A DNA stretch of 64,000 nt. Origin: Geosiphon pyriformis uo1. Taxonomy: Eukaryota > Fungi > Glomeromycota. Each line of letters opens with the position of its first letter. Within the stretch, counting starts at the first letter, position 1. Of the stretch, positions 38,116 through 42,423 are shown piece by piece. Made by a program: the position numbers and the translations under genes. Location: NCBI GenBank assembly GCA_016748015.1, contig JAAOMT010000448.1:62001-126000 (forward strand), read 5' to 3'. The notes beneath the pieces are model-generated. The model was not told the origin of the DNA. It ran no database searches and worked only from the letters and a program-made list of their open reading frames with translations.

Positions 38116-39679
38116 TTTATAAGTTAATTTGTTTAATTTTTTTATTATAATTTGTTTAGTTTTAGTAAATTTAAAATTAAATTATTTTTATTTAGTATTT
38201 TATTACTATTGTTCAAATTAAATATTGTTTTTTTATTGAAAAAAAATTTTTTATAAAATTTTAATTTAAAATATTATTATTTTACTTAAATTATTAATGT
38301 TATTAGCTTAAAATACTGGATTTTTAAAGAATAATTGTTAATAATAATAAACTGCTTATTAATTATAATAAGCTTTTTTAAAAACATATTATTATATTAA
38401 AATACTTAATATTTTTATCTAATTTGTTAATTTTATATAAAATAATATTTTTTGAAATAAAATAACTTTTTTTTTTACTTTTTTTTTAGTTATGTTTTTA
38501 GTAATACTGTTTATTATAAATATAATATAATGTTATTTGGTTTAATAAATGTCTTAATCATATTTAAATAATTAATAAAATGTAATTTATTTTGAAATAC
38601 TTTGAAAATTAATAATTATTTATTTGAATAATAATGTTTACTTATTTATTTTTAATAAATTATTTTATTTTATTTAATTGTTTTTAACATATCAAATTAA
38701 AACTTAATATTAAAAAATGGTTTTTTAAAAAACAAATCTTATTTTTTTGGATTATATAATTGGAAAAAATAAAATTTAATCCAATCTATTAAAATTAATT
38801 TAATAAATAATAATGCTTAAAAATAGAAATTATTTTTTTAAAGTTTGAAAATGATAAATACATGGAAAATATAATAATAAAAAACTCTTAAACTTATTAA
38901 AAATTAAGAAAGTTTTGGTTGTTTAGTATCTTAAACTGTTTTTATATATATTTTCAATGAAAATTATGTTTTAATTATTTTTTATAAATTTTTAAATCTT
39001 GAAAAGATTATTATTTAATTATTTTTATAAAATAATTAATCAAAAGATGGTCAAATTTCAAAAAGTCATTTAATTTTATTATCGAGATTAAGAATTTGAT
39101 AAATTCAAATGATTTTAATTAATAATAATTTTCTCTTTAAGCAAACTAAAAAATAACTACATTAATGAAAAATATTATTATTATTATTATTATTCTATAT
39201 TAAAGATGAATTCTTTTAATATTTAGAAAATTTGAATGAAAAATATCGAATTACACATTTTAAAATTTTAAATGTCTCTAATACTTATATTGAGTCTTAA
39301 TATGTAAATAATTGGTTATTTAATAAATGGCAATTGATATGTAAATGGTTGTATAAAGCAATAGTGATACAGAATTTTTCATGCTTTTACATGAAACTGA
39401 ACTGTTCGTTTAGGTAACAATACAATGAGACTTTCTTGGCGTTGTTTGTGTACTATAGCTACTTAAATTTATTCTCAATTAAACCTGATTTGTAGCAAGT
39501 AATAGTTTGATAATGAATAACGACATTTTATAATTTGTTAACGTTAGAGAAACAGCATAAATATCAACTCTGCCTTTAATGAATTACATTCTAAAAGTAC
39601 TATCAAATAAAGCTTTTCAAAGTAAATCTCTATTTATCAAAAAATTCTCATAATAACCTATTCACATTGTATTCACACC

Positions 39680-40349
39680 ATGGAAAATAAAGAAATTAAA
39701 ATGGATCTTCCAGAAACTCATGATTCCAACCTGTGTGAATACAAAAAGGTAATATATCATTTCATACAAGTGTCTGTAGCAATCATCTCTACCTTTTAAT
39801 AAAATTATTATTTTTATTTATTTTCAGGAATCAATCAAAACCACAAACCAATTGCCCCCACCGAGCATTGTTAATACGAATGATACAAACCCCATTGCGC
39901 CTGGGCCTATTCAAAATGAATTACTTGCAAACTTCTTTAAAGAAGTGCTTGCAAAGAGAGCCTCAACAAACCAACCGCCTGGACCTCAAGGATCTAGTCA
40001 GTCAACAGTAACCACAAATGTGTCAACACGAAAGATGGTGAAAAAAGAAATAGAAAAGCTTCCTCCTCTTACGCCTGGGACTACTCAAAATGAAGTACTT
40101 GCAAACTTCTTTAAAGAATTGCTTGCAAAGAGAGCCTCAACAAACCAACCGCCTGGACCTCAAGAATCTAGTCAGTCAACAGTAACCACAAATGTGTCAA
40201 CACGAAAGATGGTGAAAAAAGAAATAGAAAAGCTTCCTCCTCTTACGCCTGGGACTACTCAAAATGAAGTACTTGCAAACTTCTTTCAAGAATTGCTTGC
40301 AAAGAAAAACTCAAAAAACCAACCGCCTGGACCTCAAGGATCTAGTTAG
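39680..40349 (+). CDS. Two-exon gene (39680-39748, 39828-40349; ~196 aa) with three tandem 58-aa repeats resembling the dynein light intermediate chain C-terminal adaptor-binding region
   Basis: CACCATGG start context. A 79-nt GTAATA..TTTTCAG intron keeps the frame with ORF 39852-40349. Repeated NE(L/V)LANFFxE(L/V)LAK(R/K) and RKMVKKEIEKL. CpGs are retained here, unlike in the flanking repeats. Confidence 0.75.
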
Positions 40350-40410
40350 TCCACAGTAACCACAAATGTGTCAACACGAAAGATGGTAAAAGAAGAAATA
40401 GATAAAATGT
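39899..40410 (+). repeat. 174-bp coding tandem repeat, about 3 copies
   Basis: CAAAATGAA recurs at 39912, 40086 and 40260 (period 174). Copies are nearly identical. Confidence 0.95.
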
Positions 40411-41019
40411 TGTACTGGAAGTGATGTTGAAAAGTAGATGGGTCACCATGACGATTCTTCGAATTGCCTTTTTCTTTTGTTCCTAACCAAGATTTTATAT
40501 CCCACGAATTTTTACTTTGAAACTTCCTGTTATTATGACTCCTCGGCTTAAATTTGTGATACATATATACACATATATATAACCTTCCTCCCTTCTCATA
40601 CGTGTATCATACTTTCGACAAATACTCTATATATCCAAGTTTATAAATATCTTTAAGACACGTTGTATTTTTTTCCAGTTTTCGATGGTTTTACTATGGT
40701 GTTTGTTGTATTTGTTTTTTCTGTTTCATGAACATACCCTCATAAAAATATATTCTCATATAATGGTGTCTCAAATTAGGCAGGTTGAAATATTTGTGGA
40801 TTGGCATCGATATTTCAATAATTTCTTGGATTCTTTTTCGCCTATCGAGTTTTTTTAATTTGGGAATTGGATTATCGATAAATTTTCAAACATACAACCT
40901 TTATATCTTTCATATCCTGTTAGAATTTATTTAAAAAACATGGCTTCAATATTTGATATATAGCACTAAAGAGGTCCAATAAACCAACAACAGAAAGATT
41001 TATACTAAAATTTTCCATC

Positions 41020-41110
41020 GCTCTTTTGCTCTCTTGCTCTTTTGCTCTCTTGTTCTCTTGCTCACTTGTTCTCTTGCTCACTTGTTCTCTTAATCTCTTG
41101 CTCACTTGTT
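41020..41110. repeat. 8-bp tandem repeat (CTCTCTTG/CTCACTTG/TTCTCTTG), about 11 copies
   Basis: Directly visible. Confidence 0.85.
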
Positions 41111-41397
41111 CAACTCCTTTTCCTTTCACTCTTCTCTAGTTTTTCTTTTGGACTGAATTATCAGCCACATTAAATATTTTGATGATTGACTTTTTTTTGT
41201 TATACAAAGGATCACTTGAATTTTATGCAGAGAACATGAAAAAAGAATAGGGAAAGCGAGGATGGAATATTATTACTAGTAAATTCATAATAATTATTTT
41301 TAGTAGGTGGATAATAGATTAAACTCTTAATAATTTTTATTAATTACTTAGGTACTTTGTCAATCTACTCGATTTTGAAACTATAATTCAATAACGA

Positions 41398-41741
41398 NNN
41401 NNNNNNNNNNNNNNNNNNNNNNNNNNNNNNNNNNNNNNNNNNNNNNNNNNNNNNNNNNNNNNNNNNNNNNNNNNNNNNNNNNNNNNNNNNNNNNNNNNNN
41501 NNNNNNNNNNNNNNNNNNNNNNNNNNNNNNNNNNNNNNNNNNNNNNNNNNNNNNNNNNNNNNNNNNNNNNNNNNNNNNNNNNNNNNNNNNNNNNNNNNNN
41601 NNNNNNNNNNNNNNNNNNNNNNNNNNNNNNNNNNNNNNNNNNNNNNNNNNNNNNNNNNNNNNNNNNNNNNNNNNNNNNNNNNNNNNNNNNNNNNNNNNNN
41701 NNNNNNNNNNNNNNNNNNNNNNNNNNNNNNNNNNNNNNNNN
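41398..41741. other. Assembly gap (N run)
   Basis: 344 N characters. Confidence 1.
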
Positions 41742-42423
41742 ACAACCTCACAGAAAGCACCATTTTTATATTATAGTAAAATGTAACATGCTAATGGATA
41801 GCCAAAAAGAACAGTATTATATGGCAATAAAAATAATCAAAAAGTAATTTAACTTTAATAAGCAAATTAAATTAGTAAGAATTCAATGTGTAAAATCAAT
41901 CTCATAAATATTTTAGTCGTTATTCTTTCCAAAAAGTAACAAAAGAATCTGAAAATAGAGAAATAATTTGTAGTGTCAACAAAAAATAATACATTAGTAT
42001 AATTCTATGCTTTATATTAGCACTCTTAGAATTTAATATTAGATATCAATTGTATTTTTCTGTAAATATTTATTCAATATACTTTACAAAAACTAACAAT
42101 TATACAAATTAAGAAAAGAAACAATATAGCAAAAAAAGTTGATATTATTGTATTAATCTTTGTTTTAAATAAAACAATGATTAAGTTAGTAATTATATTA
42201 ATGATTTGGTTAATAATTAGATTAATAATTAAATCAATAAACAAGTTAATAACTAAGTCAATAATCAAGTTATTAATTAAATTAATAATTATATTAACAA
42301 TTATTTTTAAAAATAAAAAAGTTAATTAATAATATTAGTGGTTAATACATATAATTAACTATGATTAAGTAAATAGATAAAACTAAAAAATAAAAGATTT
42401 AATTATAATAATATTAATTGTAT

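Follow-up and report, generated by a model that had tools for sequence, protein, structure and literature searches.

The dynein light intermediate chain (LIC) carries two short helices in its C-terminal region, located at residues 440-455 (helix-1) and 497-504 (helix-2) in human LIC1. Isolated fragments, namely p150 CC1, overexpressed dynamitin and C-terminal fragments of LIC itself, are known as laboratory inhibitors of dynein, while we know of no natural stand-alone LIC tail. Young chimeric genes of the type exemplified by Drosophila jingwei are formed by partial DNA duplication and exon recruitment. Helix-1 of LIC is an essential contact for the adaptors Spindly, BICD2, Hook3, RILP, FIP3, ninein and TRAK1, which bind it with affinities of about 1-6 µM, and the replacement of its FF or LL pair by AA abolishes adaptor binding; helix-2 contributes little to adaptor binding, while LIC residues N-terminal of helix-1 are also needed by most adaptors (PMC6336354).

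A locus with similarities to each of these systems is found in the glomeromycotan fungus Geosiphon pyriformis, the public assembly of which is at the scaffold level (129 Mb in 795 scaffolds), was derived by k-mer binning and comprises 64% repeats at a G+C content of 29% (PMC9453076). This locus is an array of tandem units which, like the LIC C-terminal region, comprise helix-1, a disordered P/G/S/T linker and helix-2, and which is a direct DNA homolog of the last exon of the genome's own LIC gene. It differs from LIC in the lack of a Ras-like G domain, and hence of a route into the dynein complex, as well as in the presence of three copies of the segment, the joining of these to the beginning of a kinase gene and the termination of the third unit by a stop codon. 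As is the case for the laboratory inhibitors, an isolated binding segment would be expected to compete for partners; those are, however, laboratory constructs, whereas the array would be a natural candidate. Similarly to the jingwei-type chimeras, the putative promoter and first codons derive from one parent and the intron, exon and 3' end from another, with an in-frame join at a lineage-specific locus. The array is distinguished from these chimeras by a neutral substitution pattern, internal tandem amplification and transposable-element-rich surroundings. It is probably an unconstrained gene relic, at best a nascent open reading frame (ORF), that arose as a lineage-specific chimeric partial duplicate.

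The array is located in a 64,000-nt stretch of contig JAAOMT010000448.1 (C453), hereafter the window, where the long ORFs occur in three clusters at 12-16 kb, 20-23 kb and 57-63 kb. Transposable elements are abundant in the region, and the DNA around the array has a GC content of 18-26%. A putative first exon of 23 codons beginning with ATG (39680..39748, + strand, as are all of the features below except the assembly gap) is joined in frame, by means of a 79-nt GT..AG intron (39749..39827), to a repeat-containing second exon, the open frame of which (39828..40349) consists of 173 codons and a TAG stop. The predicted spliced product is 196 residues long, and the splice signals and in-frame exons agree with the spliced gene structure put forward in the original prediction. 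Exon 2 is made up of an N-terminal lead-in, two units and a third unit which is cut short past its helix-1 and linker. The tandem repeat itself spans 39898-40402 and comprises 2.9 copies of a 174-nt (58-codon) period with 95% matches. Unit 1 (39900..40073) encodes helix-1 at 39915-39959 and helix-2 at 40029-40061, unit 2 (40074..40247) encodes helix-1 at 40089-40133 and helix-2 at 40203-40235, while unit 3 (40248..40421) encodes helix-1 at 40263-40307 and carries an in-frame TAG at 40347-40349, followed by a helix-2 remnant at 40377-40409. The three elements that had been proposed for each unit are all visible in the translated units, with a helix-1-like motif (N-E-[VL]-L-A-N-F-F-x-E-[LV]-L-A-K-[RK]) followed by a P/G/S/T-rich linker and the helix-2 segment (RKMVK[KE]EI[ED]K[LM]). 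Variants carried by units 1 and 2 include a K next to FF, and AST in place of NSK. The FF pair is invariant in all units and LL is found in units 2 and 3, with VL in unit 1, although retention of these residues is not significant, as the changes are too few.

The proposed encoding of three times 58 amino acids holds for the DNA repeat, but not for the protein, where the TAG in unit 3, which occupies the place of a CAG in units 1 and 2, stops translation before helix-2. The ORF accordingly ends at 40349, rather than at 40424 as originally given, and holds three helix-1 and two helix-2 segments, with the third helix-2 (RKMVKEEIDKM) located 3' of the stop. The nonsense change at 40347 (CAG>TAG) is a C>T substitution in a TpC context. 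Since TAG also serves as the stop codon of the parent LIC gene, the TAG in unit 3 is a true stop; an alternative genetic code, with TAG as a sense codon, was ruled out on the same basis. A single-sequence AF2 model, of low confidence as expected for a disordered chain (pLDDT 42.5), contains five helices, which coincide exactly with the three helix-1 motifs and the two helix-2 motifs; those of unit 1 are modelled, likewise at low confidence, at residues 27-48 and 65-76. The array had also been described as the only CpG-retaining gene in the window, a claim which can be checked only loosely: the CpG observed/expected ratio is 0.46 in the array exon versus 0.57 in the parent exon. The CpGs of the array are not heavily decayed, and its CpG content is similar to that of the parent exon.

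The two exons were searched separately. The Pfam DLIC profile (PF05783) matches the 173-codon open part with 45.7 bits (cut-off 19.7; E 5.6e-12), in three stretches that are all limited to profile positions 388-438 of 471, and the similarity to the LIC C-terminus that had been suggested is therefore significant. A search of the PDB returned four weak matches (E 0.3-0.4), among which the only LIC entries were 6b9h_B and 6psd_F, both of them human LIC1 helix-1 peptides. As a matter of sequence similarity, the reading of the units as LIC motifs is right, well beyond chance. When the genome (128.3 Mb in 792 contigs) was scanned with the same Pfam family, DLIC G-domain exons were found only at C710:1620201-1621976, apparently a compact, single full-length LIC gene, while tail-only matches occurred in two places, both on the contig of the window. 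No LIC G-domain exon was identified on this contig in the scan, and the DNA upstream of the array is derived from the 5' part of a kinase gene and, further out, is AT-rich. These results agree with the earlier suggestions that upstream G-domain exons are missing and that the product would not attach to the dynein heavy chain, since no G-domain exon is linked to the array.

The relationship to the parent gene extends well beyond the coding sequence. In blastn comparisons the parent locus (L009:2586-4097, within C710) aligns to 39738-41284 of the window. On the parent side, the alignment takes in 11 nt at the end of the penultimate exon and runs on through the final intron and the final exon into ~0.9 kb of 3' flank. 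The intron of the array is homologous to the last intron of the parent, with 86.7% identity, and the last exons share ~90% identity over aligned columns. Compared with the parent exon, 3, 1 and 17 codons are missing from the copies; all three indels are in frame, and the largest corresponds to a linker segment of the parent that is absent from the array. The 3' flank of the array (40425..41284) has its homolog in the 3'UTR of the parent LIC gene and the DNA beyond it, with BLAST identities of 72-83%, or 90.8% over aligned columns, with many indels. Within this LIC-derived flank, positions 41020-41108 are occupied by an 8-nt microsatellite (GCTCTCTT x 11, 79% matches), which is also found in the sister copy and in a much shorter version in the parent flank. 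The retention of both intron and flank indicates a partial duplication at the DNA level, and a processed pseudogene or retrocopy was ruled out, given that the last intron and ~0.9 kb of downstream flank are retained. The inference that a partial duplicate of the fungus's own LIC gene multiplied only the adaptor-binding tail is consequently upheld by the alignment to the parent on C710.

The 5' end of the array has a different source. The sequence at 39400-39740 has at least 47 matches across the genome (out of 119 first-look candidates), most of which end near 39740. Codons 1-19 of exon 1, beginning with the ATG at 39680, derive from the 5' end of a gene that belongs to an expanded protein-kinase family; aligned copies of this family resemble each other over ~280 nt upstream, in the context of the start codon and in the first residues, M-E-N-K-E-I-K. 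The ORFs of the kinase paralogs continue from this same MENKEIK start into a Cys-rich segment and then a protein-kinase domain, matched by Pfam PK_Tyr_Ser-Thr with an E-value of 1.2e-36. Family members such as those at L017:138-1561 (-) and L018:1631-2146 (+) have the coding start MENKEIKRTRPE.HDC..C..C in common, and the ~280 nt of upstream DNA common to members is 67-79% identical, so that whole kinase gene units, with their presumed promoter included, evidently multiply. Exon 1 was also considered as the end of a transposable element on account of its 47 dispersed matches, a notion that was dropped as the copies are the 5' ends of kinase genes. The last four codons of exon 1 (E-Y-K-K), by contrast with the preceding 19, are the end of the penultimate LIC exon. 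Both parents can thus be identified on either side of a sharp junction at ~39737-39741, with the intron and flank retained; the junction is in frame and contains an AAT/AAAT microhomology, the AAAT being present in both parents, which points to microhomology-mediated joining as the likely mechanism. Judged from these alignments, the array is a chimera of the 5' region of a kinase paralog and the 3' region of LIC, in which the segment at 39400-39740 would donate the putative promoter, the 5'UTR and the ATG. Exon 1 had been proposed as part of the spliced gene; it is a putative in-frame ATG exon, but represents the 5' end of a dispersed kinase family rather than novel sequence.

The array further forms part of a ~4-kb duplicated block (38134..42173), which megablast identified as a direct repeat of a region located 43.7 kb upstream (C453:55241-60567; L010). 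The sister copy in this region contains one unit only, with the same TAG as unit 3, and was annotated by the depositors as the hypothetical protein G9A89_002977 (P0001) of 104 residues, the model of which uses an upstream ATG, has the same splice as the array and ends at the TAG. A 29-nt deletion specific to the sister copy (L010:3221-3292 versus window 39590-39679) removes an in-frame stop, bringing the upstream ATG into frame and extending the annotated ORF by 24 residues, while these 29 nt are kept by the window copy and the kinase paralogs. The sister block also contains ~1.4 kb of extra sequence at L010:1336-2772 (C453:56335-57771) which is absent from the window copy near ~39125. The original prediction did not include the TAG in unit 3, the derivation of exon 1 from a kinase gene, the sister copy located upstream at a distance of 43.7 kb or the assembly gap adjoining the locus.

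The divergence between the two blocks is unevenly distributed. Identity is 98-99.6% in the upstream flanks, 100% in exon 1 and 98.7% in the intron, but drops to 92.2% (18/230 mismatched) between the lead-in plus unit 1 of the window copy and the sister unit, an excess of mismatches that is significant against the 98-100% identical block flanks (Fisher p = 1e-6). Unit 3, apart from its first few bases, is the same as the sole unit of the sister copy, and unit 3 plus 1.1 kb downstream differ from the sister at a single position in 1149. When site patterns were polarised with the parent LIC gene over 162 columns, unit 3 and the sister copy had a derived state in common at nine sites at which units 1 and 2 are parental, whereas units 1 and 2 alone had a derived state in common at four sites, and three and one derived states were private to unit 1 and unit 2, respectively. 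These site patterns, together with the segment identities, indicate that the first tandem duplication is older than both the nonsense mutation and the block duplication. The parental states at the nine sites rule out a scenario in which the triplication was recent and units 1 and 2 then diverged fast under positive selection. In the sister copy, either two units have been lost or conversion has transferred sequence between it and the window copy.

From 40252 to 41397, right up to a run of 344 N (41398..41741), the locus matches the sister copy at 100% identity, while the other flanks differ by 1-2% (Fisher p = 0.005), a pattern that may reflect a recent conversion or a short-read mis-assembly. 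The latter would make the third unit, and with it the triplication, partly an artefact, with reads of the sister copy placed at the gap edge and a true locus in which two type-A units (the type to which units 1 and 2 belong) are followed by another 3' end. The scaffold-level status of the assembly, its 64% repeats and the k-mer binning (PMC9453076) are in keeping with such an error. Against this, the sequence runs without a gap from unit 2 into unit 3, the same pattern would result from a recent conversion event between the two direct repeats, which lie 43.7 kb from each other, and units 1 and 2 are distinct both from each other and from the sister unit, so that at least a duplicated array is real. 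An assembly artefact of this kind is considered quite unlikely.

The substitutions within the units bear on whether the array encodes a working protein. Units 1 and 2 differ at 5/174 nt, of which none is synonymous and five are non-synonymous, and the lead-in plus unit 1 of the window copy compared to the sister copy gives a dN/dS of 1.54. Comparison of the parent with the copies gives a dN/dS of ~0.5, a value that includes the constrained parent branch. On the type-A lineage upstream of the stop, seven non-synonymous changes and one synonymous change were counted (classified by the authors), a ratio with a probability of P = 0.42 at omega = 1 and P = 0.009 at omega = 0.2. An omega of <= 0.2 is thus rejected and one of 0.5 is not, with only about 8-20 informative substitutions available. 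The unit substitutions fit neutrality and speak against strong purifying selection, while weak constraint (omega about 0.5) is compatible with them. The original wording that the adaptor-binding tail had been kept, which implies selection, is not sustained by this neutral pattern, in which strong purifying selection is rejected, and the nonsense mutation found in one unit and the sister copy likewise counts against it. The junction, the 174-nt unit and the indels constitute three accidents that each preserved the frame, and modestly favour some coding history. As the units have changed in a neutral manner, an unconstrained relic or nascent ORF is the most likely status of the array, and a relic is more likely than a working dynein-adaptor decoy.

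The same locus may nevertheless be read as a young expressed gene, in which a kinase promoter would drive the production of a disordered, 196-residue multivalent binder of Hook-type and other activating adaptors, acting, for lack of a Ras-like domain, as a decoy or a cross-linker. The frame is kept across the junction, the splice sites, the 174-nt unit and the indels, the complete kinase-family 5' region brings with it a start codon in a favourable context and what may plausibly be a promoter, and the sister copy is annotated as a gene with exactly the same splice; yet purifying selection is not detectable, and unit 3 and the sister copy have a nonsense mutation in common. Retention of FF in all units and of LL in units 2 and 3 would be expected of an adaptor binder, as mutation of these residues abolishes adaptor binding, but most adaptors also need residues N-terminal of helix-1 and the affinities are micromolar (PMC6336354). 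Candidate partners are available in the form of three HOOK_N-encoding loci in the Geosiphon genome, with a Hook N-terminal domain encoded at C572:978109-978408, and the AF2 helices coincide with the five motifs, albeit with a pLDDT of only 42.5. The CpGs are without heavy decay, and the few substitutions are compatible with weak constraint (omega about 0.5); the AT-rich and transposable-element-rich surroundings count against this reading. Tandem helix-1-like proteins are also encoded in two Rhizophagus species, with the array as their best Geosiphon match, whereas no relative of the chimera itself is found in protein libraries and the triplicated copy is absent among the deposited proteins. 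Taken together, a young expressed gene is considered somewhat unlikely. The likelihoods attached to the relic, the expressed gene and the partial artefact refer to readings that are not strictly exclusive.

The search for orthologs that had been proposed as a check of the original prediction returned no relative of the Geosiphon chimera in protein libraries of 5.8 and 1.8 billion proteins, the only relatives in these being the sister copy and one non-orthologous Rhizophagus protein. An exhaustive HMMER search over 1.8 billion representatives returned these same two proteins and no others, and the product of the triplicated copy was not found among the deposited proteins in a word search. In Rhizophagus irregularis, GLOIN_2v1704749 (P0002, GET49866.1; 162 aa) comprises three tandem units around the motif N-E-I-L-A-N-F-F-Q-D-L-L-S-K-K-K. 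RclHR1_15140006 (P0003) of Rhizophagus clarus is a partial protein of 210 aa with a coiled coil followed by at least two helix-1-like motifs, encoded by a gene that runs past the contig end (L024:10001-10631, BEXD01000574.1). The motif is 72% identical with 100% positives between the two proteins, while their linkers have diverged. A word search with P0003 retrieved P0003 itself and nothing else. Like the Geosiphon array, the Rhizophagus proteins are small, contain two to three tandem copies of NE[IV]LANFFQ[DN]LLSKKK with a period of about 40-55 residues and are without an LIC G domain. They differ from the array in their unrelated, K/E/Q-rich linkers and the absence of the helix-2 motif, and the R. 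clarus protein additionally in its N-terminal coiled coil. Pfam DLIC does not match P0002 or P0003, in which the motif is not long enough for a hit.

Within Geosiphon, P0002 matches the array best (E 3.2e-11) and the LIC tail next, and no separate Geosiphon ortholog of the Rhizophagus proteins was found in the genome, where the array and LIC tail are the best matches. The array is 82-90% identical to the LIC locus of its own genome, non-coding parts included, and must therefore have arisen long after Archaeosporales and Glomerales separated. It is too young for orthology, and any relation to the Rhizophagus proteins would thus represent a parallel origin. The conserved motif with diverged linkers in Rhizophagus suggests that such an architecture can be useful. 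A broader proposal, that stand-alone multivalent LIC helix-1 proteins evolved more than once in the Glomeromycotina, as the Geosiphon array and the Rhizophagus pair, and could in these large coenocytic hyphae regulate dynein activating adaptors such as Hook by natural competition, or serve as scaffolds for them, is unlikely.

The course of events can be reconstructed as follows. A segment of ~1.5 kb was copied from the 3' end of the LIC gene on C710, from the last four codons of the penultimate exon through to the 3' flank, and joined in frame, at a 3-4-nt microhomology, to the 5' flank and first 19 codons of a kinase paralog. An early tandem duplication of the 58-codon segment then gave rise to type A (units 1 and 2) and type B (unit 3), followed by the C-to-T nonsense change in type B. 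Later a ~4-kb block was duplicated at a distance of 43.7 kb, the sister copy today having one type-B unit. Changes in the units since then follow a neutral pattern, and the array is unlikely to constitute an established dynein regulator. If translated, it would yield a disordered protein of 196 residues that contains three helix-1 and two helix-2 segments but no heavy-chain anchor, and such a product could only compete with LIC for, or bridge, LIC-binding adaptors. With three helix-1 segments and no G domain, it might be expected to bind dimeric adaptors avidly and to compete with dynein-bound LIC.

As the evidence stands, the locus represents a clean and datable case of the making of a chimeric ORF in a repeat-rich genome related to those of the arbuscular mycorrhizal fungi (AMF), illustrating segmental duplication, probable microhomology joining and tandem amplification as routes to such ORFs. 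For dynein biology the Rhizophagus tandem-motif pair, for which abundant public RNA-seq is available, is more promising. If the Geosiphon product is made and able to bind adaptors, it would represent the first 'tail-only' LIC to occur naturally, and would compete multivalently, as a built-in factor, for the micromolar contact with helix-1 on which every cargo adaptor relies. This would, if true, add a new layer of dynein regulation in fungi which move their nuclei and organelles along long coenocytic hyphae.
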